Below, piece after piece: positions 4,680-57,359 of a DNA stretch of 64,000 nt. How positions within the stretch are numbered: position 1 is the stretch's first letter; each line of letters opens with the position of its first letter. The position numbers and the translations under genes are program-made. The notes beneath the pieces are model-generated. The model was not told the origin of the DNA. It worked only from the letters and a program-made list of their open reading frames with translations, and searched no databases. Location of the stretch: positions 298,019 through 362,018 of the IMG/VR virus record IMGVR_UViG_3300042502_001233. One strand, written 5' to 3'.

Positions 4680-5278
4680 TTTGTTTTGTTTTGTTTATGT
4701 TCTAGTTTTTTGAAATCTAACGTTTTGTATAACATACTATGATGATATGACTCTTTAAAAAAAGATTCGAATTTAACAACTTCTTTTATTGATGTTAATC
4801 TAATTTGTTTTCTTGACTGTTTAAAATTAATATCGAATTTTGTTTTAAAATAATTTATTATTAATTGTATTTCCTCATCATTAAAATTATCAACAGCTAA
4901 AATTAAATGACAAATATTACCGTTATAATAAAGACAACCATCATCCATATACCATACAGCGATAGCCATAGGTTCTAACATTTCTAAAATTTCTTCTGTG
5001 ATTACTTTTCTATCGTTATAAAATAATTCTCTATATTTAACATAATCATCAATTATAGAATAGCATGTTATTGAATGATAAAATTTATTAGTCCTTTTAT
5101 CAAATCTTTTTCGTTCATAAATTGAATAATTATTTAAAGAATTTTCAGCTTTCCATATAGCATAGTCTTTTTGAGCTAATGAATGTTCCCATCTAACACT
5201 ATAAGATTTTCGTCTATTACATAGTTTAGGTACTATTGCATCACCTAAAATCGTTCCTAATAAAATTTGTTCTTTCAT
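4676..5278 (-). CDS. LAGLIDADG homing endonuclease
   Basis: LLGTILGDA and AIAVWYMDDG motifs. Confidence 0.88.
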   Translation of the reverse strand: MKEQILLGTILGDAIVPKLCNRRKSYSVRWEHSLAQKDYAIWKAENSLNNYSIYERKRFDKRTNKFYHSITCYSIIDDYVKYRELFYNDRKVITEEILEMLEPMAIAVWYMDDGCLYYNGNICHLILAVDNFNDEEIQLIINYFKTKFDINFKQSRKQIRLTSIKEVVKFESFFKESYHHSMLYKTLDFKKLEHKQNKTK

Positions 5279-5419
5279 TTGTATGTTTTATTATAAATAT
5301 ACAAAACCATGATAAAAGACTAACACAAAATAGTAATGCTATTATTTTCATATATACTTTTTAACGTTTACAAATATACTACATAAAACGCTAAAATGCA
5401 AGTTTTTTTTACGTTTTTT

Positions 5420-5578
5420 TTAACAGTAAGACCAATTAGATGGGTCATTGTGGTCATCTAATTCATGTTCTTCGTGGTCATGTTTTTCTTTATTTTTATG
5501 TTTATGACCTTTCATAATATTAGACAATCTTTTTTTAATCTGAGTAGATTTTACTATTATGTTTACAAATTTTTTCAT
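5420..5578 (-). CDS. small His-rich hypothetical protein (52 aa)
   Basis: Read manually: MKKFVNII...GHKHKNKEKHDHEEHELDDHNDPSNWSYC. Confidence 0.45.
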   Translation of the reverse strand: MKKFVNIIVKSTQIKKRLSNIMKGHKHKNKEKHDHEEHELDDHNDPSNWSYC

Positions 5579-5582
5579 AATT

Positions 5583-6611
5583 TTAATTTTTTAATTTTAA
5601 TAACCATTGTAATTTGGCTTTTATGTTATATATTTTTAAACTAAAACTTTGTAACCATGTTATAAAACCTCTATATTTGTACGCTAATTTTAATTTTTTA
5701 ACAATACCCTTATGTTCGGTAGGCGATACCTTCATAATCCATGGCATCCAACTTATATCATCAGAAGCAACTATTGGAACTTTAGCTGTTACGAAATCAG
5801 CTGTAACAATGTTGAACGATTCAGAAAAAGATACTTGCATACCTATATCCATTTTAGATGCCGCTTCCAAAAATTCAGCATGTTTATACCATCTATGTTC
5901 AACCAACTCGTGTCTAGAATGTTCAAACAACGCTTGAATGTTTTTTAACGCATTGTCACCAGATTGTTCAGTTCTGGTTCCGTTGATATGAAATCTTAAA
6001 GTTTTACCTATTTTTTCAGCAAACTCTATCGCAGCCATCGCTTGTTGGTATGTGTTTTTCATTGGTCTAATCGCACCAAAAGAACCAATATCAACAAACT
6101 CTTTGCTTTTCACATGTTTTTTAGGTGTGAATGGTTTCGCTTTATAAATATTTGGTAAAAAGATAAAATTACCTTCTGGGAAACAGTAAGTTAATTGTTC
6201 AGTAAGTTCCGTTGTGTTAGGAGCAATTTCAATTTTTAACTCATCGATAGAAGCATATTGTTTTATCCATCTAGTTGCGATACCTTCGTTGGCCAAAAAT
6301 GGTGCTTTTGAATGTAATCTCACAATCCATCTTCTATTTAGATGTCTTTGGATTTGGAACAATTCTTTGAACTTTGCTGGTGGAACCCAAATAGCTTCAA
6401 TTATAACCACATCTGGGTTAAATTCAGTCACTACTCTATCAATAGAATTTGAGTCAGGTACTGGTGTAATTTTAGCATCAAAGTCGTTTTCATTTAGATA
6501 ATTAACAACAAAACTAGCTGAATTAAATAATCCAGATGTGACACCATAGTAGTCTTTTACTCTGTCGCAAGTTATAAATTGTATACGTTTTTTTGGGGTG
6601 ATTTCGTTCAT
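5583..6611 (-). CDS. GT-B (family 4-like) glycosyltransferase
   Basis: FGAIRPMKN and SESFNIVTADFVTAKVPIVASD donor-binding motif. Confidence 0.8.
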   Translation of the reverse strand: MNEITPKKRIQFITCDRVKDYYGVTSGLFNSASFVVNYLNENDFDAKITPVPDSNSIDRVVTEFNPDVVIIEAIWVPPAKFKELFQIQRHLNRRWIVRLHSKAPFLANEGIATRWIKQYASIDELKIEIAPNTTELTEQLTYCFPEGNFIFLPNIYKAKPFTPKKHVKSKEFVDIGSFGAIRPMKNTYQQAMAAIEFAEKIGKTLRFHINGTRTEQSGDNALKNIQALFEHSRHELVEHRWYKHAEFLEAASKMDIGMQVSFSESFNIVTADFVTAKVPIVASDDISWMPWIMKVSPTEHKGIVKKLKLAYKYRGFITWLQSFSLKIYNIKAKLQWLLKLKN

Positions 6612-6685
6612 TTTGTCGTTTAATAATAAATATAGTAAACGACCTAGAAATAATATTTTTTTTGTGTTAATTTTGTACTATTTTG

Positions 6686-6784
6686 TGCGAGAGGATGGAT
6701 TCGAACCACCGACACCTAGTCCCTAGTTGTTCCCTTGTACTTCGGGCTAAAAACCTTAGCGTTTACCAACTTCGCCACTCTCGC
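6686..6784 (-). ncRNA. tRNA-like RNA with remodelled anticodon/variable region
   Basis: Acceptor GCGAGAG/CTCTCGC, Leu-type D arm, T arm GGTGG-TTCGAAT-CCATC; no canonical 7-nt anticodon loop. Confidence 0.6.
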
Positions 6785-6869
6785 AGTTTCTAGTCTTTCC
6801 CAGTGTCACCCACTTATAAGCCTCTAGGTTTTTGTTCCTGTTAGGGTAAGGCAATTAATCACAATGTAA

Positions 6870-7517
6870 TTATTTTCTTCCTTGAACCCAACCTTCGTTT
6901 AAGTAGGTTTCAAGGTCTTCTTTTTTAATTTTTTTGTTGGTACCATCTTTGGTTATCCAACATGTACCATATTGACTGTTTAATTCGCCAATACCAGTGT
7001 TTTTCATTTTTTCTGATATTAATATCTTAGATTCCTCTGAATGTTTTTTACCATCCCAATCGTGAAAATATTTTTTTTCACGTTTACCTTCTTTATATGC
7101 TCTTTTTAAACCGTTAGAATGATTTTGTTTATAATTTATTTTAAATTCTAAATCATTTTCTCTTTTTTTAGCTAAACCTTTACCACCAGAACTTGAACAT
7201 TTAATCATATGTTCTTCACTTGAAAACCCACCTTGACCACCTTCCTTAAGGTTCATACATTTACCATCAGAAATTAATTCTTTGGTAACTAACTCAATCT
7301 CTCTAAGAACTAATTCTTCTCTTGTCGGTAAGAACTCAAGTATTTCTTTGGTATGGTTTTCTACACCATATTTTCTAATTGAATATCTGAGTATTTTACC
7401 ACTCCCCATATAACCATCATCTAGGTTACTTGTGCTATGCATCCCTACATACCATCGTCCAGTTACATTACATGTTGTTTTATATATGTAATGTATGTTT
7501 CTTTCTTTTCTTGCCAT
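6870..7517 (-). CDS. GIY-YIG (Seg-like) homing endonuclease
   Basis: HYIYKTT...WYVGMH...YMGSG; NUMOD3-like GKKHSEESKILIS. Confidence 0.92.
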   Translation of the reverse strand: MARKERNIHYIYKTTCNVTGRWYVGMHSTSNLDDGYMGSGKILRYSIRKYGVENHTKEILEFLPTREELVLREIELVTKELISDGKCMNLKEGGQGGFSSEEHMIKCSSSGGKGLAKKRENDLEFKINYKQNHSNGLKRAYKEGKREKKYFHDWDGKKHSEESKILISEKMKNTGIGELNSQYGTCWITKDGTNKKIKKEDLETYLNEGWVQGRK

Positions 7518-7574
7518 TTTACTTCTTTCTAAATAAATATCTAGAAATTATAAAAAGTACAAAAAAGTTTAAGG

Positions 7575-7648
7575 TGGAAGTAACGGGACTCGAACCCGTG
7601 TTCTCGCAACATCAGCCGCTTTATACTATCCTATTGTACTATACTCCC
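7575..7648 (-). ncRNA. tRNA-like RNA with Ala-type acceptor (G3:U70) and 4-nt anticodon loop
   Basis: GGGAGTA/TACTTCC-A acceptor, D and T arms intact; central hairpin GCGGC-TGAT-GTTGC. Confidence 0.6.
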
Positions 7649-7877
7649 ATTTGATTACTGTAGGCAATGAATAACACTTATCTATCATTTATTAGCATCA
7701 GATAGAACGATTCTTCTTGTTACCCAACTATCGGTGTCGCTAACGCCTCATGCACTCACACAGTAATCATTTTCTAGTCTTTCCCAGTGTTTTCAACCAT
7801 TGCAGTAAGTGCTCTAGAACACTTGCCAATTACCTAACATATAAATCTTGTTAGGGGCTTAACCGTTGGATTTCTTG

Positions 7878-7970
7878 TGGAGAAGAAAGGGTTCGAACCT
7901 TTACAAGCCGCTAAGCTGCCATCCATGACCTTCCTCTGGACTCGAACCAGACTTCTTCCAAAGCTTCTCC
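7878..7970 (-). ncRNA. tRNA-like RNA with two T-arm hairpins
   Basis: GGAGAAG/CTTCTCC closing stem; TCTGG-TTCGAGT-CCAGA and AAAGG-TTCGAAC-CCTTT. Confidence 0.5.
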
Positions 7971-8318
7971 ATTTTGAGAGGATTAGGTATGGCTCACCCC
8001 TCTATAACTGACGTCCTACCTTGACAGTCTTTTTGTTTTTGGTTAAGAATAGGGTTCACACCTAAAAAGAGACTCATGTTCTCGGAAACCACTTGAGTTT
8101 CCACCACCTTTTGCGGCTTGTTAACCGATTTGTCGATGCTCTGGCCACTGCCACCAGTTCTCCCCTTGAAACGAAGTGTTTTCTGTTAAACTACGCACCA
8201 TAAGACCTTGCAAGGAATCGCTACTAAGTCGTCGACTACTTTTTGCTAAACTATTCTGATACATTTGCAACCCTAACACCGCTACTGCGAGGCTAGGAAA
8301 TGTACCTTAACAATTTTG

Positions 8319-8482
8319 TAGACAAGGCTGAGTTCGAATCAGCATACCCAAACTAGCCACGCTTGGAAAAGGTTTTTAATGAGCTTTCCCCTTTGCTCCG
8401 AGCCGAATGTGTCTATCAATTTAATGTTCACCTAGAACAACCACCCCCAATGAGGTCAGCTTGACTTTTCCACCACTTGTCT
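8319..8482 (-). ncRNA. expanded tRNA-like RNA (about 165 nt)
   Basis: AGACAAG/CTTGTCT acceptor, T arm GCTGA-TTCGAAC-TCAGC, Leu-like D-arm halves TGGTGGAA...TAGACAC split by an insertion. Confidence 0.45.
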
Positions 8483-8743
8483 CCTATCTGTACCCTACAT
8501 AGATTGGGTAAGCGACCTCTGTCACTTCCTATCAACAATGCCATCCATGTTTGGCTATAGTGTATAGACATACCAAGTCTAATTGGTTTTGATTACATCT
8601 CCTAGCCGCTAAGCCTGATGTCGCGTGCCAGACCTTACTGGCATAAATGGTGGTTACACTACTGTTGAATCAGAACAGATTTTTTTTTACATTGCAAATA
8701 TACTACTTAGTTTTTATACTTGCAAATTTTTTTTAAACTTTTT

Positions 8744-8998
8744 TTATTCACACCAACAATTATTTCTATCATACCCACAACTAGGGCATTTGTTGGCGCT
8801 TTCTCTTTCGTGTTCTTTACGTCTGGTTTCAGCGTCTGGAACCCATTCACCGATTTCTTCATTGTACTCCATTCCTTCATAAAAACCACCTTTGGTATTT
8901 GATGAAAAGAATTCTCTGTTGGTCATTAAACCTTGTTTTCTGTGATGGTCATCCCAAAACGTGTCATCTTCGTTATACGCTGGATATTTGTTGCTCAT
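8744..8998 (-). CDS. hypothetical protein with C-terminal Cys cluster
   Basis: 84 aa, CPSC...CWC. Confidence 0.6.
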   Translation of the reverse strand: MSNKYPAYNEDDTFWDDHHRKQGLMTNREFFSSNTKGGFYEGMEYNEEIGEWVPDAETRRKEHERESANKCPSCGYDRNNCWCE

Positions 8999-9002
8999 AG
9001 TA

Positions 9003-9668
9003 CTATTTTTTTATTTCTACCACAATTGGTTTGTTTTGCACTTGGTAGTTGAAGTTAAGTATTGATGCGTTTACAAACACCCCACCATCTGGAAACTCAA
9101 ACTTACCGTATGCTTCGTGGATATGACCACACACAAATAGCTTTAGGTTGGTCATTTCAGCAGACTTCTCCAATAAATAAGGACAGCCAGTAGATACACC
9201 TCTAGTTGTCATATCCAAGAAACCTTTCATTGGACCATGTGTTATAAGCACATCGGTATCCAACGGTATCATATCCCAATGTTGACATATATCAGTACCC
9301 ATTCTATTAAACGCCCAATCATAAAACCATGGGGTGACTCCACTACCATGAAATTTTAACCCTTCAATTTCTACATTAGTATCATGTAAATAAATTATTG
9401 TTGGGTATTTTTCTTGTAACATTTCGTTGACAGCAAAAGTACTAACTTTTTCAAACCAAAAATCATGATTACCTGGAATAAAAATTTTGTATTTATAATT
9501 TAAAGCATTATACCAACTTAAGAAATCTTCAACCTCTCTTAGACTTCCTCTTCCAGATATATCACCAGCGTGTATTATCATGTCAATAGAACCATCTTTA
9601 TTATCTAACCAATCTGGCGGTATGCGGTGATGTATTGAATGGGTGTCACTTATACATGTAATAGTCAT
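9003..9668 (-). CDS. metallophosphoesterase (MPPED/239FB-like)
   Basis: ISDTH, IHAGD, GNHD, THGP, GHIHE. Confidence 0.92.
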   Translation of the reverse strand: MTITCISDTHSIHHRIPPDWLDNKDGSIDMIIHAGDISGRGSLREVEDFLSWYNALNYKYKIFIPGNHDFWFEKVSTFAVNEMLQEKYPTIIYLHDTNVEIEGLKFHGSGVTPWFYDWAFNRMGTDICQHWDMIPLDTDVLITHGPMKGFLDMTTRGVSTGCPYLLEKSAEMTNLKLFVCGHIHEAYGKFEFPDGGVFVNASILNFNYQVQNKPIVVEIKK

Positions 9669-10525
9669 ATTTCATTTATTTTTTCTAAACATGTGATACT
9701 TAAACATTCACTCCATCCTTCAAATGGTAATTTAGGCATCACTTTATAATTTTTATATTCTTTAATTAATCTTTTCTCCATATCATAAATTTTAGATGGG
9801 TTATCCTCGATTAATTTTATTATTTCAAACTGGTAATTTTTTAAACTTCTATAACGTTCTTTTACAGTATTAGATGTAATACCAAATTTTATAAATTCTT
9901 CGTTTTTATTAAAAACCCTTAAAATATAAAAAAAAGCTGTTTTACCTTTGGTTTTTTTTAACCATGATTCTTTACTAAAACCAACACTTCCACATTTTTT
10001 ACAACCATGACCACATAAATGTGATTCAATTAATTGGTCAAATTCACCATGTATTGGACAATTAATTTTTATTTTAACCTTACCATTAGTATAATCAAAA
10101 GTTTTATAAGAATAAAAATTATTATGTACTTTATTAGCTTTAAATACGAACAGTTTATATTTTTCAGTACACGTCTCAATACTTATTTTAGAACCTTTAA
10201 GTAAATCGTAACATTGTGGTGTATATTTAAAACCGTTTACGTCTTCAACTAATAAAGATTCTTTCATTCCATTATAGTCTAACAATTTTAATGTTGGGTG
10301 TAACAATTTTATCTTTGATTCGATGTATTTTTCTTTATCAACAACTGATTGAATATTAAAAGATGATTTTAATAAATTATAACCATTACTTTTTCGATAA
10401 AGCCAACCATCACTATCTTCAACTATTATTTCAGAGGTAACATTAGTAAATTTTACTATTTTAAAATTTGGGAATTTTTCATTAAATTTATTAATAAAAG
10501 ATTCATTTGCTTCTTTATGTTTCAT
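9665..10525 (-). CDS. putative homing endonuclease (Zn-finger repeat plus C-terminal GIY-YIG-like domain)
   Basis: CPIHGEF...HLCGHGCKKC; FYIL...KFGIT...KERY...E. Confidence 0.75.
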   Translation of the reverse strand: MKHKEANESFINKFNEKFPNFKIVKFTNVTSEIIVEDSDGWLYRKSNGYNLLKSSFNIQSVVDKEKYIESKIKLLHPTLKLLDYNGMKESLLVEDVNGFKYTPQCYDLLKGSKISIETCTEKYKLFVFKANKVHNNFYSYKTFDYTNGKVKIKINCPIHGEFDQLIESHLCGHGCKKCGSVGFSKESWLKKTKGKTAFFYILRVFNKNEEFIKFGITSNTVKERYRSLKNYQFEIIKLIEDNPSKIYDMEKRLIKEYKNYKVMPKLPFEGWSECLSITCLEKINEI

Positions 10526-10554
10526 ACTAATAAATATCTAAAAATATTTAAAAG

Positions 10555-10596
10555 TCAAATTTTATTGTGTGTATCACTTATGCATGTTATTTTCAT
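10555..10596 (-). pseudogene. orphaned original 5' end of the 9003-9668 phosphoesterase (MKITCISDTHNKI*)
   Basis: Matches MTITCISDTHSIH at the start of 9003-9668; ATG overlaps the upstream stop. Confidence 0.8.
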
Positions 10597-11816
10597 TATG
10601 AAAAATTTTCATTATCATTTTCAAATGAACCACCAGCTCCAGAGCCTGAGAAGTCTCCACCCCCAAATCCTCCTTCGAATGATTCATTATTATTATTCAT
10701 TGATTCACCGATAATACCACCAATCAAATTACCACCAACAACAGTTCCGATTAACGCTGAATCGGTTATATAACCAATCATCGCTGATTCAACAAAAGAA
10801 TTATCATTATCAACAGTAACGTTTGTTGTTTTGGTTTGACCAGTATTTTCTCTATGTTTAAAATAATTTTTAACATAGGTGTCGTCTTTGGTTATATATA
10901 AACCATTTTTGTCTTTTTTATTAATGGTTTTTGCGATTGGTGTGAATTCAGTAATTCGTTTTAAGTATTGTCTACTTTCTAAAGACCCATGCCAAATGTG
11001 ATACAAATCACCTTTAACATAACCTAATTTACCTTTTGTTTTCTTAAAGAATTTTTTAGACCATTTGGTTACAGCATCAATATCTTCTGTAAACGATTTA
11101 GCGATACACTTATGACAAATATGACCAGCAGCAGCATGTGCCATAATATGGTCAGCACCACCTACCAAAGCTTTGTCATACAAAGGTATTTTATCTAAAA
11201 GACTTCTTTGAGCACCCCATGCAAAACCAACGTGACCGTGTTTATCATAGTTGTGGTCATCTGAATAATCAGTTGTAACATAGTTGGCAGCGAAGCTTCT
11301 CCACAATCTAGGATGTCTAACTGGTGGTTCACATCTCATATGGTCTTTAGCTTCATGTAAGTTAAAGTCTGGTTCGTATTGGTCTTTTTCCAAATGAACA
11401 CAATATTCAAACAATTGAACAATTTGTTTTTTCTGTAATTCGTCAACGGCATCTACCAACCAATTTTTGTTTGTGAATAACACATCAGCATCAACCCACA
11501 TAACATATTTAAAAGAATAAGGTAATTTTTTAATCAAACCGTTCAATAGCGTTTCTTTGTGCCAAAGAGTTGTTTGTGTGTGTACCAAGCTAAAATTTAA
11601 GTTGTCATGGTTTAATTCTGGTTTTGAATCACCAATAACACATTCCACAATTCTATGGTTTAAATGTTTTATTGATTCGTAAAATTTGTTGAAAGCGATT
11701 AACCTATAAGGGTTATTCTCAGGGTTAAAATAACAAGCGATGATTACCGCTTCTGGGTGGTTCACATATCCTGTGTTTGTTTCCCCGAATAAAAATTTTT
11801 TGAAAAAATTATGCAA
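10596..11816 (-). CDS. GT-A-like glycosyltransferase with Gly-rich C-terminal tail
   Basis: LWHKETLLN, WVDAD (DxD), GGADH, HIWHG; tail GGFGGGDFSGSGAGGSF. Confidence 0.7.
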   Translation of the reverse strand: MHNFFKKFLFGETNTGYVNHPEAVIIACYFNPENNPYRLIAFNKFYESIKHLNHRIVECVIGDSKPELNHDNLNFSLVHTQTTLWHKETLLNGLIKKLPYSFKYVMWVDADVLFTNKNWLVDAVDELQKKQIVQLFEYCVHLEKDQYEPDFNLHEAKDHMRCEPPVRHPRLWRSFAANYVTTDYSDDHNYDKHGHVGFAWGAQRSLLDKIPLYDKALVGGADHIMAHAAAGHICHKCIAKSFTEDIDAVTKWSKKFFKKTKGKLGYVKGDLYHIWHGSLESRQYLKRITEFTPIAKTINKKDKNGLYITKDDTYVKNYFKHRENTGQTKTTNVTVDNDNSFVESAMIGYITDSALIGTVVGGNLIGGIIGESMNNNNESFEGGFGGGDFSGSGAGGSFENDNENFS

Positions 11817-11875
11817 GTTATTTTCATTATCTTTTATTTTTTACAAATATACTAAAACTTTTATTAATCTGCAAC

Positions 11876-12673
11876 TTAAAGACCGCTATTTTTACTAATA
11901 TAACGTTCAGAAGCCGCAACCACAGCTTCTGAATACCAATCATCATAAGCTTTTTCTATGAATTCATATATAATTTCAGTCTCACCAATAAAATAATTTT
12001 GCATTTTTTCTTTGGTCAAAGGTCCTCGGCCAATCCATGTTACAACCCAATTCCTTGTCCCCATAGTTATAACCAACTCTTGGAAAAATTCTTGTATTTT
12101 GTTTTGTATTACGTTCTTGCTATACCACTCATACAATAAAGTTTTGGCGTGTTCAACTTGTTTATATGTATCCAAAGATAACTGAGTATCAAATTTTTCA
12201 GAAAGCTCTTTATATTTAACACCAGATTGATAATTTTTGATATACCTTTCAACTCTAGGTCTAATTATGTATTCGTTATAATATGAATGAAAATAAGCTG
12301 TGATAAAATCTGGGCTGTATTCTTTCTTTCTATTAAAATGTTTTAACATAACTTGTAACCCATTAGTCGCACCGTATTTATCACCAACACTATTTAGATA
12401 ATCGTACAAATCTTGAGTTAGTTTTTCTTTAAATTTTAAATACCACCCTTTTACTATGTCAAAAGATGAAGTTTTATCATCTATGTAATAGTTGCCAATT
12501 ATTACATTGAAACGATGTGTGATAAAATAATCAAATTTTATTTTTTGTTTGGTATCTTTCTCAACTACCATAACATCTATGTTGTCTAGCATTACGGTAT
12601 AGTTTCTATTTAAGAATTTTACTATAAACTTTTCGTCTGTCATTTTTATAATCTTTTGACTTAAATATAACAA
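11876..12673 (-). CDS. hypothetical protein
   Basis: 265-aa ORF (ATG start probably slightly downstream). Confidence 0.7.
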   Translation of the reverse strand: MLYLSQKIIKMTDEKFIVKFLNRNYTVMLDNIDVMVVEKDTKQKIKFDYFITHRFNVIIGNYYIDDKTSSFDIVKGWYLKFKEKLTQDLYDYLNSVGDKYGATNGLQVMLKHFNRKKEYSPDFITAYFHSYYNEYIIRPRVERYIKNYQSGVKYKELSEKFDTQLSLDTYKQVEHAKTLLYEWYSKNVIQNKIQEFFQELVITMGTRNWVVTWIGRGPLTKEKMQNYFIGETEIIYEFIEKAYDDWYSEAVVAASERYISKNSGL

Positions 12674-14789: not shown

Positions 14790-14948
14790 ATGAAAAAACA
14801 AGATAAACGAATTCTTTTAAATATTGATGAAGAGTTAAAAACGTTGTTCACAAAAAAATGTGATGATAACCATATGAAAATATCAGCTAGAATAAAATAT
14901 CTAATAAAAATGGATATTGAAAATAAAATAACAATTAACAATGGATGA
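14790..14948 (+). CDS. small ribbon-helix-helix-like protein
   Basis: KRILLNIDEELKTLFTKKC...ISARIKYLI; TATTTAT motif upstream. Confidence 0.55.
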   Translation: MKKQDKRILLNIDEELKTLFTKKCDDNHMKISARIKYLIKMDIENKITINNG

Positions 14949-15558
14949 TAAACGTAAAAAATATAGAGAAGATAATAAAGAAAAAATAAAACAATATCGC
15001 AAAGCTTATTACCTTAAAAATAGAGAAAAAGAATTAGAGTATCAAAAAAATTTAACAAAACCTTCTTTAACTGATGATGAAAAAGAACGAAACAAATTAT
15101 ACGCTATAGAATATCGAAAAAATAACAATGAAAAAGTAAAAGAATCTAGGAAAAAATGGAAAAACAAAAATAAGTCACATATAAATAATTATAACAAAGA
15201 AAAAAGAATAAACGACCCTATGTTTAAATTAATCTCTAACTATAGAAGTATGTTATATTATAGACTAAAAAACAATGGTTTTGTTAAAAATAATAAATCT
15301 GAAATAATATTAGGTTGCACTTTTGATGAATTCAGAACCTATATAGAATCACTTTGGGAATCTTGGATGACTTGGGATAACTACGGTAATCCAAAAGATG
15401 GGGTTTATGAACCTAATAAGACTTGGGATATTGACCATATGATACCGACAGATTCGGCAACGACTGAAGAAGAACTAATTAAACTTAACCACCATACAAA
15501 TCTTCAACCAATGTGTAGTTATCATAATAGGTTCATAAAATCAAATAAATTTATTTAA
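14941..15558 (+). CDS. HNH endonuclease with Lys/Glu-rich N-terminus
   Basis: WMTWDNYG...WDIDHMIP...LNHHTNLQPMC...N. Confidence 0.85.
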   Translation: MDDKRKKYREDNKEKIKQYRKAYYLKNREKELEYQKNLTKPSLTDDEKERNKLYAIEYRKNNNEKVKESRKKWKNKNKSHINNYNKEKRINDPMFKLISNYRSMLYYRLKNNGFVKNNKSEIILGCTFDEFRTYIESLWESWMTWDNYGNPKDGVYEPNKTWDIDHMIPTDSATTEEELIKLNHHTNLQPMCSYHNRFIKSNKFI

Positions 15559-16469: not shown

Positions 16470-17111
16470 ATGACAACAGAAGAAAAAAAAGAAAAAAAGA
16501 GATTATATGATATAGAATATCGTAAAAAAAATAAAGAAAAACTTTGTAATCAAAAAAAAGAATGGGTTGAAAACAACAAAGAAAAAATATCAAGTTACAA
16601 ACAAAAACATAAAGAAAATAAAAAAATATCAGATAAAAAATATGCTGAAAAAAATAAAACAAAATTAAACATAAAAAAAACAAATTGGGCTAAAGCTAAC
16701 ATAGATAAAGTTAGACAAGCAAAATTAAAATATGAAAAAAATAGATTAGCTACTGATTATTTATATAAATTAAAACATAACATTAGTTGTGCAATAAGAC
16801 AGTCATTAAAAAAGAATGGTTTTAGTAAAAAATCTAAAACACATGAAATACTTGGTTGTACTTATGAAAAATTTAAAGAACACGTTGAGTCACAATGGGA
16901 ATCATGGATGTCTTGGAATAATTATGGTAAATATAATGGTGAATTAAACTATGGGTGGGATATAGACCATATAATTCCAACTTCATCAGCAATAACAGAA
17001 GAAGATGTTATTAAATTAAACCATTACACAAATCTTAAACCATTATGTAGCAAAGTTAATAGAGATATTAAAAAACATTATACCAATGTAGGTATACCAT
17101 TTATTACATGA
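16470..17111 (+). CDS. HNH endonuclease, paralog of 14941-15558
   Basis: WMSWNNYG...WDIDHIIP...LNHYTNLKPLC...N. Confidence 0.85.
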   Translation: MTTEEKKEKKRLYDIEYRKKNKEKLCNQKKEWVENNKEKISSYKQKHKENKKISDKKYAEKNKTKLNIKKTNWAKANIDKVRQAKLKYEKNRLATDYLYKLKHNISCAIRQSLKKNGFSKKSKTHEILGCTYEKFKEHVESQWESWMSWNNYGKYNGELNYGWDIDHIIPTSSAITEEDVIKLNHYTNLKPLCSKVNRDIKKHYTNVGIPFIT

Positions 17112-33449: not shown

Positions 33450-34341
33450 TCATTTTTAATTTTAATATCTTTGTTATTTTATTCACATTTTCATTATATT
33501 TTATTACTATTAATTTAATTTTATTTTTTTCACAATAATCTTTTTTTATAGCATCAGTTTTTTGTTGCTCCTTAAAACGTTTTTCACCACCAAAATAATC
33601 GATAGGTTTATAATGTTGTATACCATTAAATTCAATACATGTATTATATTCTGGTAGATAGAAATCAAAAGGTAAAACATTTTTATTTTTACATTCATCA
33701 AACTTATGTTGTGGGATAAATTTAATCGAAAATTTATCTAGTAATTCTCTAATCTTATTTTCACCTTTAGATTCTTTACAAAAAGGACATCCTTGTCCTT
33801 TTAAGTGATTTTGTGGTGTTTGCTCGAAGTTACCATGATTTGAACAAATCATTTTTACTTTTTCACCAAAACCTAAATATTCAACCAACGAATAATCATA
33901 TTTATCATTATGAACTAATTTTGCTTTTTCAATAAATTTTAAAACTTTAGTTTTTCTTTTGATAAAACTACACAGTTCACAATCTCTACCCTTTAAATGA
34001 TTAGATGGTGTTTGTTCAAATTCACCATGTATCGGACAAATTATTTTTACTTTAGTATCATAATTAATGTATTCAACATTAGAGTAATTAAACTTGTCAC
34101 CATGTATTGATTTGCTTTTCCCAATAAAATCATCTATGGATATTTTTTGTTTATCTTGTGAGCATTTAGAACACCCATAACCACTTAAATGACCACTAGC
34201 TCTTTGTTCAAACTCACCATGAATTGGACAGATTATTTTTACTTTAAACTTACTTTCAGTATATTCAACTAATGAATAATCAAACTTATCACCATGAATT
34301 AACTTAGCTTTCTCAATAAATTTTAAATTTTTATCTATCAT
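33436..34341 (-). CDS. putative homing endonuclease (three CPIHG Zn repeats plus Vsr-like domain)
   Basis: ICPIHGEFEQ repeats; LPFDFYLP...IEFNGIQHY. Confidence 0.85.
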   Translation of the reverse strand: MIDKNLKFIEKAKLIHGDKFDYSLVEYTESKFKVKIICPIHGEFEQRASGHLSGYGCSKCSQDKQKISIDDFIGKSKSIHGDKFNYSNVEYINYDTKVKIICPIHGEFEQTPSNHLKGRDCELCSFIKRKTKVLKFIEKAKLVHNDKYDYSLVEYLGFGEKVKMICSNHGNFEQTPQNHLKGQGCPFCKESKGENKIRELLDKFSIKFIPQHKFDECKNKNVLPFDFYLPEYNTCIEFNGIQHYKPIDYFGGEKRFKEQQKTDAIKKDYCEKNKIKLIVIKYNENVNKITKILKLKMNEQN

Positions 34342-38513: not shown

Positions 38514-38914
38514 TCTAATAATTTTTTTATTTGTTTTATTTTTTCGTTAACTCTTTGGTTAACTCTTTCTTCTACCACTCTACTCAACACAGATTCAATA
38601 ATAGTTTCAGTTATCTTATCTATTTTATCATCAATGTGTCGTTTCAATGATGTTTCAAATTCGGCTAACCGTTTATCAATTTCTCTCTTAAGATATTCTC
38701 TCTTTCGTTCTATATCTTCTTGTGTTTGTGATAGTAATTCTTGGTCGATAAACTTATGTAATTCTTCCCTTAATTCTTTAGGTGTAATCACCATATCATC
38801 CCCATAACTGTTTGTGAATTTAACAAAATCATTATCTGAAATTTGTATCGAACCACTTAATGAGTCAAGCCTTCTAAAATCGTTATATGCGTTTAAATCA
38901 CTTATTCTCGCCAT
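38510..38914 (-). CDS. coiled-coil hypothetical protein
   Basis: 134-aa charged helical ORF. Confidence 0.65.
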   Translation of the reverse strand: MARISDLNAYNDFRRLDSLSGSIQISDNDFVKFTNSYGDDMVITPKELREELHKFIDQELLSQTQEDIERKREYLKREIDKRLAEFETSLKRHIDDKIDKITETIIESVLSRVVEERVNQRVNEKIKQIKKLLE

Positions 38915-39335
38915 AATGGTTCAACATTAACTCGTAAACCTCTTGCCAATCCGTTTCTGGGCTGAAACCTGCTTTGTCCTCAAACAAAACATTCATATAA
39001 GGTTTTTTATCGTAATTCCCATAACCTTTAGGGTCAGTAGGAATCTCTGGGTTCTCATTCACGTATTTAAAATGAATATCGTTCTCAAGGAACAATCTTT
39101 GATATTCAATTACTTCATGTGGGTGAGAACACGTATACAAGAACATAACCACTTCTGGTATTGTACTTAACAATTTAAGTGTTTCTTTAGCCATTGGGTA
39201 AAACTCATCAGGTGTGTTACCATATTGATAGTTAGGTTTAAGGATTGTCCCGTGAATATCAAAGGCGAAATAACCTTTATCCCATCCTCTTTTTTCTTTA
39301 TTTCTAAAAAAATTTTTAATTGCTGTACTTACCAT
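38898..39335 (-). CDS. HAD-like hydrolase
   Basis: FDIHGT, LYTCS, KPY...EDKAGF. Confidence 0.75.
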   Translation of the reverse strand: MVSTAIKNFFRNKEKRGWDKGYFAFDIHGTILKPNYQYGNTPDEFYPMAKETLKLLSTIPEVVMFLYTCSHPHEVIEYQRLFLENDIHFKYVNENPEIPTDPKGYGNYDKKPYMNVLFEDKAGFSPETDWQEVYELMLNHYGENK

Positions 39336-40125
39336 AACTTTCTTTTATTTGTTTGTATTTAATTAATTTTCGTGATAACCCAAAATTATCACCTTTGTAA
39401 ATGTATTCACCTAATTTTATTATATTTTTACCCAAAATACGTAAAACAGAACTTTTGTTTTCTTTGTTTGTTTTTTTATTTAAATTAATAACACGTCTAA
39501 CTTTATATTTAATTTCTAATTCATCACATAAATCTTCAAAATAAGACCAATCCTGTTCATAAGATGAAGTTATCGCAAATTGTCTACCATTATTTTTATA
39601 ATAAAAAGACCCATCACCATCTATTAATCCTCTAAAAAAATAATGTTTTAATTCATCAGGTATTTTAGATAATATTTTATCAGCTGATTTATATGATTTT
39701 TTATCATAATCATTTTCAATTAAAAAATTATTTATATTTCTATTTGAACCTATTAAATATACAGCCGTTTTCCAACCATTTTTACTTCTATCTTGGATTG
39801 ATTTACCCCAATTACCTAATTTGAAAAATAATGATTCTATTTCATCAATATCTTTTTTCACACCACCAACATTAAAATGTCTACCATCAGCCCTTACATG
39901 ACCATCAGCCCATATAAAACCTAAAACATATGCTGTATATGAATTCGTGATTTCTTCAAATTCTGAAAATTTTAAACTTTTTTCTTTTTTTAAGTTTAAA
40001 ACTCTTATTTTATAAACCACTTGTTCAACTGGTATACCTAAAACATCAGAACAATGAAATCTATCAGTTAAAGGGTATTCTTTAATTAAAAAATTTATTT
40101 CGTTTTCACTCCATTTGTGTTTCAT
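39316..40125 (-). CDS. LAGLIDADG homing endonuclease
   Basis: YVLGFIWADG and FFRGLIDGDG. Confidence 0.92.
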   Translation of the reverse strand: MKHKWSENEINFLIKEYPLTDRFHCSDVLGIPVEQVVYKIRVLNLKKEKSLKFSEFEEITNSYTAYVLGFIWADGHVRADGRHFNVGGVKKDIDEIESLFFKLGNWGKSIQDRSKNGWKTAVYLIGSNRNINNFLIENDYDKKSYKSADKILSKIPDELKHYFFRGLIDGDGSFYYKNNGRQFAITSSYEQDWSYFEDLCDELEIKYKVRRVINLNKKTNKENKSSVLRILGKNIIKLGEYIYKGDNFGLSRKLIKYKQIKESYGKYSN

Positions 40126-40187
40126 ATTTTTGTTTTATTATAAATATAATAAAAAACACAAAAAGATAAAGTTATTCACGTAAAATT

Positions 40188-40268
40188 CTAAAACCAAAAC
40201 GTTCTATCCCAATTTCTTTTTTCTTTAAGTTCGAAATGATTTATTTCTATCGCTCTTGTTATACTCAT
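40188..40268 (-). pseudogene. orphaned original 5' end of the 38898-39335 HAD gene
   Basis: MSITRAIEINHFELKEKRNWDRTFWF* versus MVSTAIKNFFRNKEKRGWDKGYFAF. Confidence 0.7.
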
Positions 40269-56546: not shown

Positions 56547-57359
56547 TTAATACCACCACCATTTAGCTTGGTTTCTGTTTTGGTAATGAAACTCTTGGAA
56601 GTCTTGACTCCAAGCGCTAGCACTGGTCCAATCAGTCCAATCACTATCGGTGATAAACTCTCTTTCAGTCATTTCGTTACCTTGTTCTTTGTGCCACTCA
56701 TGAGAGTCGTTAATGAACATGGTGTTGAGGTTCTTTCTAAGAGCCATTTTGTCTTTGCGTCTGTTTCTTTTTGAGACACTTTTTAAGAACCAAGAATAAC
56801 CACCCTCATTGTAAGGATTCATAATAGTTCTAAGATGCCAAAGTTGGTCTCTTACAAATCTTAATTCTCGTTCTAACTCACCATCAACCACTTTACGGTG
56901 AGTGATGTAACTGTTTCTGATTTTCATAACAAAATAAAAATCTGGAACGTAAGACGCTGAGTAATATTTAGCTATAGTACCGTTCCAACGTGGTTTATCA
57001 TCTAAATGATTGTGTCGGAAATACTTTGCCACTTGTGGCGGCAATTTTAAATATTGTTCCTCAGACATTAATTTTATCTTAGGTTTTCTATCAATCACAT
57101 AACCTCTCTTTTTTTCGTAGAACACAGTCGTTGGAGACCATGTTAACGTAGAGCAATTATCAATGATGTATTGGAATACCCAAGCATCTTGTCTTCTAGA
57201 AATGTCTTCTCTTAATTCCAAATAAGCTTCATAGCCTTTGTGTATTGGTTTTTCAAGTTCAACATAACCTAAATTTTTGATGGCCATTTCAAGCTCATCT
57301 TCTTTTTCCATTAACGCTAAATAGCGTTTGTAATCTTTGTGTTTTGTGTTTTTACTCAT
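56547..57359 (-). CDS. hypothetical protein within tRNA cluster
   Basis: 270-aa ORF. Confidence 0.75.
   Translation of the reverse strand: MSKNTKHKDYKRYLALMEKEDELEMAIKNLGYVELEKPIHKGYEAYLELREDISRRQDAWVFQYIIDNCSTLTWSPTTVFYEKKRGYVIDRKPKIKLMSEEQYLKLPPQVAKYFRHNHLDDKPRWNGTIAKYYSASYVPDFYFVMKIRNSYITHRKVVDGELERELRFVRDQLWHLRTIMNPYNEGGYSWFLKSVSKRNRRKDKMALRKNLNTMFINDSHEWHKEQGNEMTEREFITDSDWTDWTSASAWSQDFQEFHYQNRNQAKWWWY

Follow-up and report, generated by a model that had tools for sequence, protein, structure and literature searches.

In a giant phage of lake water, a putative homing endonuclease gene (HEG) was found to be inserted 11 codons into a metallophosphoesterase (MPE) gene, accompanied by its own rewritten copy of the first 14 codons of that gene, such that the MPE reading frame remains complete without any need for splicing. 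The locus lies on the minus strand of a 64,000-nt stretch of the metagenome-assembled virus record IMGVR_UViG_3300042502_001233 (positions 298,019 to 362,018; this whole stretch is hereafter the window). The arrangement had first been described by a sequence-only reading, in which an old start was said to be stranded upstream of the endonuclease while the functional gene restarts downstream with synonymous changes, overlapping the endonuclease stop, and in which the pattern was said to recur in the window. Everything described in that reading was confirmed to be present. Its interpretation, a splicing-free invasion of a conserved active-site motif by a cassette of promoter, endonuclease and immune N-terminus, is supported by comparison with relatives, albeit with reservations over the words "immune" and "promoter" that are set out below.

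All genes of the locus are on the minus strand. A 406-aa gene of unknown function (10596..11816) ends with a TAA that overlaps an ATG at 10596..10594 (TAATG), and orthologues of this gene lie directly before the uninterrupted MPE gene in the relatives L003, L004 and L061. The ATG opens a 13-codon mini-ORF, MKITCISDTHNKI, at 10555..10596, of which codons 1-11 (10596..10564, MKITCISDTHN) are the stranded old 5' end of the MPE gene, running on into cassette sequence and reaching a stop after two more codons. A 38-nt leader (10526..10563) follows, with the left border of the insert between 10564 and 10563, and then the 286-aa HEG (9665..10525), whose TGA overlaps the ATG of the 221-aa MPE gene (9003..9668) in the form ATGA. 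The cassette-borne codons 1-14 of the MPE gene (9627..9668) read MTITCISDTHSIHH, and the right border of the insert is at about 9626/9625. The old and new copies agree at 9 of the first 10 residues and differ at 7 of the first 30 nucleotides, with five of the seven changes being synonymous. The MPE gene is intact, matching PF00149 from residue 1 (E 3e-15; 57.5 bits against a cut-off of 21.5; residues 1-185 on profile positions 1-190 of 191) as well as PHROG 1649, and it is 91% identical in nucleotides to the HEG-less allele L002 from 9623 onward. Metal-binding motif I (Asp8-x-His10) is encoded by the rewritten segment, and both D8 and H10 are kept in every new start seen. A megablast search of the locus against GenBank phages returned only a 35-nt match in crAss-like phage MPE genes, so there is no close isolate, and the phage is known only from lake metagenomes. 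ARAGORN gave one odd tRNA-like call in 5000-9000.

The HEG product has N-terminal modules, a DUF723/CapR-type zinc finger (about residues 150-180) and a C-terminal region (about 190-286) resembling the T5orf172 nuclease domain of the GIY-YIG clan. It matches PHROG 681 "endonuclease" (E 4.9e-33), and its relatives include an annotated Hef-like HEG. DUF723 (PF05265) scores 21.9 bits against a cut-off of 20.9 and is annotated on nearly all of the 110 listed relatives, and an alignment revealed 28 invariant residues that include the Cys/His ligands C156, H159, C175 and C178. The evidence for the nuclease family is only moderate: T5orf172 (PF10544) scores 18.3 bits, below its cut-off of 20, and a six-frame search of the genome with that profile returned no hit. 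The structural model (pLDDT 91) gave no match in PDB at E 0.001 or better when searched at full length with Foldseek, while an exhaustive aligner placed residues 190-286 closest to GIY-YIG nucleases (HIGLE, Slx1, UvrC, and I-TevI) at Z of only 3.4-4.4.

The resemblance between the stranded and the new start is not due to chance. A genome-wide scan for an M-initiated copy of a gene's first 11 residues, at 8 or more identities and 150-3000 nt upstream on the same strand, found three cases in 362 kb, of which this is one. Two looser scans were run with controls: a 10-residue scan of the window gave no hit in its control regions, and a 30-residue local-alignment scan of the genome scored this case 50 against a maximum of 44 in reverse-strand controls. 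Tandem HNH genes at 14941-15558 and 16470-17111 also scored as duplicated ends but are full-length paralogues that do not fit the pattern, and a C-terminal duplicate at 57359/54386 scored at noise level and was dropped.

The most direct evidence for insertion comes from a related phage pair, L068 (filled) and L003 (empty), which differ by a single 937-nt insert comprising leader, HEG and rewritten codons 1-14. The left flank is 90.9% identical and stops at codon 11, whereas the right flank is 98.7% identical over 2320 nt and resumes at codon 15; the first 45 nt of the gene differ at 20 positions. The same junction, immediately after CAYAAT (His10-Asn11), was found in the six HEG lineages with DNA, namely the window, L064, L065, L066/67, L068/69 and L111, although the upstream genes differ between them. 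In addition, all eight HEG relatives examined (48-94% identity, including the HEG beside P0207) lie directly 5' of an MPE gene with stop and start overlapping, the overlap with the HEG being 4 to 32 nt depending on the lineage.

The two copies of the gene start were shown to have different origins. The uninterrupted alleles L003, L004 and L005 begin MKITCISDTHNQ, and the stranded copy of the window matches L005 at 33 of 33 nt and at 97.3% over 75 nt including the end of the upstream gene, while the stranded copy of L068 is identical to L003. A match of the uninterrupted alleles to the new start instead of the stranded one, which had been named beforehand as grounds for rejecting the interpretation, was therefore not observed. 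Lake-metagenome contigs match the stranded copy and then diverge at 10561-10564. The new start, by contrast, travels with the HEG. A 64-nt run spanning the HEG end and codons 1-14 is identical in the window and in L062, whose MPE protein is only 65% identical, with divergence following, and the same start is present in L063; it sits on three unrelated MPE gene bodies, and occurs on MPE types of 217, 221 and 226 aa. The HEGs of the window and L064 are 95.6% identical in nucleotides with a dN/dS of 0.15, whereas the flanking RNB-domain (RNase II/R-like) gene is 74% identical, as expected of horizontal transfer and selection.

Signs of decay and loss were also observed. The contig L001 is otherwise identical to the window but lacks a 14-nt stretch inside the HEG (10182..10195), which shifts the HEG frame and is the only difference across 6.3 kb of alignment. 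In L063 the 5' two-thirds of the HEG are deleted, and the stranded copy in L065 has lost its ATG and carries a Thr-to-Ile change in the motif. HEG-less alleles carrying cassette-type codons were found, and L061 is an old/new hybrid, although HEG-less alleles with SIHH or SKHE could be natural variants that predate the cassette and not footprints of HEG loss.

The proposed promoter is supported only indirectly. The leader carries ATATTTA at 10537..10531, 5 nt from the HEG ATG, and this is the most enriched upstream motif of the genome, occurring within 45 nt upstream of 72 of 312 ORFs against 6.5 expected, with a 5-nt spacing class among them. A sigma-70 consensus scan, on the other hand, found 10 promoter-like sites, fewer than the mean of 19 in shuffled sequence, and its one good hit (10624..10595) lies upstream of the old start and outside the cassette.

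The claim of recurrence also held. At 38898..40268 on the minus strand, a stranded start of 26 codons (40268..40188) is followed by a LAGLIDADG HEG of 269 aa (40125..39316; PF14528, E 1.8e-9) and a restarted 145-aa gene (39335..38898), whose conserved FDIHGT motif follows directly after the insertion point. The HEG-less allele L076 matches this stranded copy at 25 of 26 residues, and L078 has the same layout of stranded start, HEG and new start. The design is found again just outside the window with a third HEG, of phrog_3339.

Taken together, the feature is explained with good confidence as a mobile cassette of about 938 nt (10563 to about 9626), consisting of a short leader with a promoter-like phage motif, a putative homing endonuclease gene of DUF723 and probable T5orf172 (Hef-like) type, and a rewritten copy of MPE codons 1-14 with its own ATG. 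In this view, the resident first 11 codons are left upstream as a dead mini-ORF and the protein is made whole from the start codon of the cassette, with no intron, intein or split protein being required. The endonuclease would cut HEG-less alleles at or near this site, and repair would copy the cassette from a co-infecting donor, the homology arms being the upstream gene plus old codons 1-11 on the left and the gene body from codon 15 on the right. The inserted copy interrupts the original site, and its rewritten codons plausibly prevent re-cleavage and also reduce recombination between the two short repeats. Whereas the anatomy, the insertion polymorphism, the horizontal spread and the decay are established by the comparisons, which rest on metagenome contigs alone, cleavage, the exact cut site, biased inheritance, expression and immunity are inferred. 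Immunity by recoding is not general in any case, since in L111 and L066 the new copy keeps the same 12-18 nt around the junction as the presumed target, so that any protection there must come from the changed codons 3-7 or from the interruption alone. The synonymous differences could also simply reflect a start segment taken from a distant allele, with no selection for recoding.

Of the alternatives, the least improbable, though still unlikely, is an ordinary intergenic free-standing HEG between the 406-aa gene and the MPE gene, the 11-codon fragment being an accidental scar of a single sloppy recombination. Most phage free-standing HEGs are indeed intergenic and cut a neighbouring gene of HEG-less relatives (PMC2988022), and this HEG has its own start and stop. 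However, the shared junction in six lineages with different upstream genes, the filled/empty pair in which the insert carries codons 1-14 and replaces codons 12-14 of the target, and the match of each stranded copy to the local HEG-less allele all speak against it. Even less likely is a self-splicing intron or ribosomal bypass joining the old start, as a true first exon, to the gene body. Short N-terminal exons missed by annotation are documented in the terminase and tape-measure genes of phage ICP1 (PMC10448857), and the sequencing data are silent on the matter: of 24 listed runs, the six guessed as RNA contain only small shares of the sequence and may be DNA, and the four compared with the locus were contigs, which carry no information on transcripts or splicing, while one joint that skips 1074 nt (9767 to 10842) has only 22 nt on its shorter side. 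Nevertheless, an Rfam search at E up to 1 found no group I or II intron in 6500-12000, only 38 nt of the insert lie outside the HEG and MPE reading frames, the downstream copy re-encodes the whole N-terminus with a conserved ATG in every lineage, and the stranded copy is decaying in L065. An intein is likewise not indicated, as the HEG has its own ATG and stop, a stop codon separates it from the old start, and no Hint domain was hit. An assembly artefact, conceivable for a metagenome-assembled virus, can be all but dismissed because the structure was assembled independently in L001 and in a lake-water contig spanning 9619-11000 with no differences, nine listed runs (each from a different study, one possibly the source of the window itself) contain at least half of the sampled 31-mers, and the same architecture appears in relatives from NCBI, ENA, JGI and Logan assemblies.

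Homing endonucleases are thought to need an intron, an intein or an intergenic position to avoid killing the genes they target, the known exceptions splitting the protein or needing ribosomal bypass. The present case offers a simpler solution with clean comparative evidence, in which the element can sit inside active-site codons while the enzyme would stay a single normal polypeptide. Gene callers will see a complete gene plus an unexplained mini-ORF, the N-terminal codons have a different history from the rest of the gene, which matters for phylogenetics, and the HEG-less alleles with cassette-type codons may bear on how resistance to selfish nucleases spreads in natural phage populations. 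A natural design for nuclease-driven gene replacement is also offered. More tentatively, and with slightly less than even likelihood, such terminus-replacing cassettes may be a general third route, beside introns and inteins, by which homing endonucleases colonise catalytic-motif codons. On this reading, any nuclease family could use the route provided the target lies near the 5' end of a gene, with at least three families doing so in this one jumbo-phage lineage; the rewritten segment would be under selection both to escape the element's own nuclease and to keep the two short repeats from recombining the element out, and the HEG-less alleles with cassette-type codons would be footprints that immunise phage populations.

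Among described systems, the T5orf172-family phage HEGs with CapR/DUF723 zinc-finger DNA-binding modules of ICP1 and relatives (PMC10448857), together with the annotated Hef-like HEG of Pseudomonas phage PA5oct, share the zinc-finger module and, as far as the weak match to the nuclease domain goes, the domain architecture, as well as the position next to conserved genes and the location at boundaries of genetic exchange, although the text searched in that paper describes free-standing or intron-associated HEGs without mention of a cassette-borne gene start. In the genes-in-pieces created by HEG insertion, such as Aeh1 nrdA/mobE and gene 43 of phage 25 (PMC2988022), an intron-less HEG likewise sits within a functionally critical region of a conserved enzyme gene, but both halves are expressed and reassemble and nothing is duplicated, whereas here the upstream piece is taken to be non-functional and a duplicate replaces it. 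Closer parallels are the fungal mitochondrial HEG insertions carrying a replacement gene end (Allomyces atp6, Ophiostoma rps3, and Phlebia atp6/cox2; summarised in PMC4019555), in which a splicing-free insertion into a coding region brings a foreign copy of the displaced terminus fused in frame while the original terminus remains as a remnant. Those cases, with GIY-YIG or LAGLIDADG nucleases and in organelles instead of phages, replace the 3' end, whereas replacement of the 5' end requires the cassette to supply a start codon and translation-initiation context as well. The other closest parallel is the T4 MobA/gene 60 mobile cassette (bioRxiv 10.1101/2022.08.31.505936; PMC2988022), in which a free-standing HEG inserts inside an ORF of the topoisomerase gene at one conserved position in several phage clades, deletes a few target codons, supplies its own diverged homologous replacement (reported at 67-81% DNA identity) with a downstream N-terminal extension overlapping the HEG ORF, and shows HEG decay and "hit and run" footprints. 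MobA, an HNH enzyme and not of the DUF723 and probable T5orf172 type seen here, splits the protein into two functional subunits and needs a 50-nt translational bypass, whereas the insertion described here is so close to the 5' end that the upstream 11 codons are discarded, the cassette re-encodes the whole N-terminus with a start codon, and one normal polypeptide would result.

The window comprises the last 64 kb of a 362-kb virus record with 31% G+C, from a phage known only from lake and freshwater metagenomes and without a close isolate among GenBank phages. Twenty of the 24 sequencing runs listed contain part of the 2.1-kb stretch, and nine of them, each from a different study and one possibly the source of the window itself, contain at least half of its sampled 31-mers. 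Unless stated otherwise, all genes discussed here are on the minus strand. A 406-aa gene (11816..10596) ends in a TAA that overlaps an ATG at 10596, and this ATG opens MKITCISDTHN, followed by two more codons and a stop (10596..10555). After a 38-nt leader comes a 286-aa ORF (10525..9665), which was found to match PHROG 681 ‘endonuclease’ (E 4.9e-33), Pfam DUF723 just above its cut-off and T5orf172 just below it. The TGA of this putative homing endonuclease gene (HEG) overlaps the ATG of a 221-aa calcineurin-like metallophosphoesterase (MPE) gene (9668..9003; PF00149, 57.5 bits, matched from residue 1), which starts MTITCISDTHSIHH. The two starts share 9 of their first 10 residues and differ at 7 of the first 30 nt, five of these changes being synonymous. 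A strict genome-wide scan for such M-initiated upstream copies of a gene start found three cases in 362 kb, and a looser scan of the window found none in its control regions. The sequence-only reading, which described an old start stranded upstream of an endonuclease gene and a restarted gene downstream with synonymous changes, is therefore exact.

In related viral contigs without the HEG, the stop of the 406-aa gene overlaps the MPE start directly, and the MPE begins MKITCISDTHNQH in two of them (L003 and L004), while a third HEG-less allele (L005) matches the stranded fragment at 33 of 33 nt and at 97.3% over 75 nt. Among 120 MPE relatives, roughly 100 begin with this type of start. The stranded copy is therefore the old resident allele, and the outcome named beforehand as a refutation, namely that uninterrupted alleles would match the new rather than the stranded start, does not hold.

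The decisive comparison came from L003 and a near-isogenic contig with the HEG, L068. The left flank is 90.9% identical and ends exactly after codon 11, whereas the right flank is 98.7% identical over 2320 nt and resumes at codon 15. Between them, L068 carries 937 extra nucleotides, consisting of a 38-nt leader, an 876-nt HEG and a foreign version of codons 1-14, whose first 20 nt overlap the 3' end of the HEG. The first 45 nt of the gene differ from L003 at 20 positions, against 1.3% in the 2320 nt of restored homology. The HEG and the new gene start are therefore one inserted unit.

HEG relatives at 48-94% identity were further examined on their contigs, and all eight contexts show the HEG directly 5' of an MPE gene with overlapping stop and start, on backbones that share nothing else. 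In all six lineages with DNA available, a stranded MPE start precedes the HEG and ends at the same place, just after the His10-Asn11 codons (CAYAAT). Stranded copies follow the local backbone, that of L068 being identical to L003 and that of the window to L005, whereas the new start follows the HEG. The window and two further contigs, L062 and L063, share the new start on MPE bodies of three types (221, 226 and 217 aa), and although the MPE protein of L062 is only 65% identical to that of the window, the two share 64 identical nucleotides across the HEG end and codons 1-14. The HEGs of the window and of another HEG-bearing lineage, L064, are 95.6% identical in nucleotides (dN/dS 0.15), while the neighbouring RNB-domain (RNase II/R-like) gene is 74% identical. 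Together these results indicate horizontal movement and purifying selection on the nuclease.

Several stages of a HEG life cycle were also recognised. A contig from another sample, L001, is identical to the window over 6.3 kb except for a 14-nt deletion (10182-10195) that frameshifts the HEG, which is either natural decay of the endonuclease or an assembly variant. L063 has lost the 5' two-thirds of the HEG, the stranded start and the 406-aa gene, and keeps only the last 84 HEG codons plus the new start. L061 and L107 have no HEG but carry cassette-type codons (THSIHH, THSKHE). L061 is old-type at codons 2, 3, 8 and 9 and new-type at codons 10-14, which is the product expected if the two short repeats recombined and removed the HEG, although a pre-existing variant is not excluded. 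In L065, another lineage with the HEG, the stranded copy has lost its ATG and has Ile in place of the motif Thr, as expected for a dead remnant.

The evidence for the nuclease family is moderate. An alignment of 20 relatives has 28 invariant residues, including a Cys/His zinc-finger set and conserved Tyr, Lys-x-Gly, Arg and Glu positions in the C-terminal domain. The AlphaFold model is confident (pLDDT 91). A Foldseek search of the full-length model against PDB found nothing at E 0.001 or better, and an exhaustive structural aligner placed GIY-YIG nucleases (HIGLE, Slx1, UvrC, I-TevI) among the best matches to residues 190-286 only at Z 3.4-4.4. The T5orf172-plus-DUF723 architecture is that described for phage HEGs (PMC10448857). 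The phage is unusually rich in HEG-like genes, the genome holding many GIY-YIG and HNH genes. A 304-aa open frame at about 33770-34335 in the window (genome 331790-332353) contains three tandem DUF723-type zinc-finger repeats, and several similar multi-repeat ORFs occur elsewhere in the genome. Two full-length paralogous HNH-like genes of 205 and 213 aa lie in tandem on the plus strand (14941-15558 and 16470-17111), about 900 nt apart. A GIY-YIG (SegE-like, phrog_314) HEG at 6870-7517 abuts an ORF-free stretch (7514-8140) that includes conserved blocks, a tRNA-like element (7573-7648) and sub-threshold Rfam tmRNA hits, and since related contigs encode SmpB nearby, a phage tmRNA gene, possibly disturbed by the HEG, may lie here. 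A short translated motif (VVIPLQNG) recurs three times on the plus strand (26024, 26397 and 26595) at spacings of about 200-370 nt and may represent a repeated non-coding element or small paralogous ORFs.

The sequence-only reading also proposed that the cassette carries a promoter. A sigma-70 scan was uninformative in this respect. However, ATATTTA is one of the two most enriched 7-mers within 45 nt upstream of ORFs in this genome, being present before 72 of 312 ORFs against 6.5 expected, usually 13-18 nt before the ATG, with a minor class 5 nt before the ATG to which the HEG leader belongs (10537..10531). All six HEG leaders with DNA end in a similar A+T-rich run just before the ATG, and five carry ATATTTATTA, whereas the LAGLIDADG HEG elsewhere in the window has the common form. 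Carrying a promoter is therefore plausible but unproven. The same 19-nt leader that precedes the ATG of the Hef-like HEG also precedes another HEG-like ORF (MEINTNVKRCSKCQ...), placed right after a tRNA gene at genome position 37522 outside the window, which suggests a shared expression signal among HEGs. Across the whole genome (for example, window 10531-10537 and 40135-40155), two upstream motif classes are enriched before ORFs, namely ATATTTAT(A/T)A, usually 13-18 nt before the ATG, and TAnnTTTG-like words (TATTTGC, ATCTTTG), with no G-rich Shine-Dalgarno signal. This resembles Bacteroidota-type expression signals and hints at the host.

With regard to immunity, the new copy in the window and in L068 differs heavily from the target around the junction, at 14 of 27 nt in codons 7-15. 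In two other lineages, L111 and L066, the bases around the junction are essentially the same as in the presumed target, and the differences lie in codons 3-7. The interpretation of the sequence-only reading, a splicing-free invasion by a cassette of promoter, endonuclease and immune N-terminus, is supported, although its parts do not stand on equal footing: interruption of the site by the insert is certain, whereas cleavage itself and the protection of the new copy by recoding remain inferences. As for the alternative of an intron or intein, Rfam finds no ribozyme at E up to 1, only 38 nt of the insert lie outside the HEG and MPE reading frames, and the HEG has its own start and stop, such that splicing is excluded, albeit by anatomy only.

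The claim that the pattern recurs in the window also held. A 26-codon stranded start (40268..40188) is followed by a LAGLIDADG HEG (40125..39316; PF14528) and a restarted 145-aa gene (39335..38898; phrog_1238-like), the break falling just before the conserved FDIHGT motif. HEG-less relatives match the stranded copy, one of them (L076) at 25 of 26 residues, and a further contig, L078, shows the same layout. Just outside the window, 4.8-6.4 kb before its start, the design is repeated with a different nuclease at genome 293259..291648 (locus L110:649-2260), where a 29-residue stranded start, MNIFVLDTNTKKCAQ..., precedes a 322-aa HEG (phrog_3339 ‘homing endonuclease’) and a restarted phrog_624 gene that begins MNIFVLDLDVKKCAK....

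Full-text literature searches found no description of a cassette that replaces the 5' end of a gene together with its start codon, and it is therefore in this respect that the present element is regarded as new, whereas HEG insertions bringing a replacement for part of the target gene are already known. Fungal mitochondrial HEG insertions replace C-termini (PMC4019555), and other in-gene phage HEGs create two-piece enzymes (PMC2988022). The nearest phage precedent is the MobA/gene 60 element, the insert of which encodes a diverged homologous replacement of the deleted target segment and overlaps the HEG ORF, but which splits the protein and needs bypass (10.1101/2022.08.31.505936).
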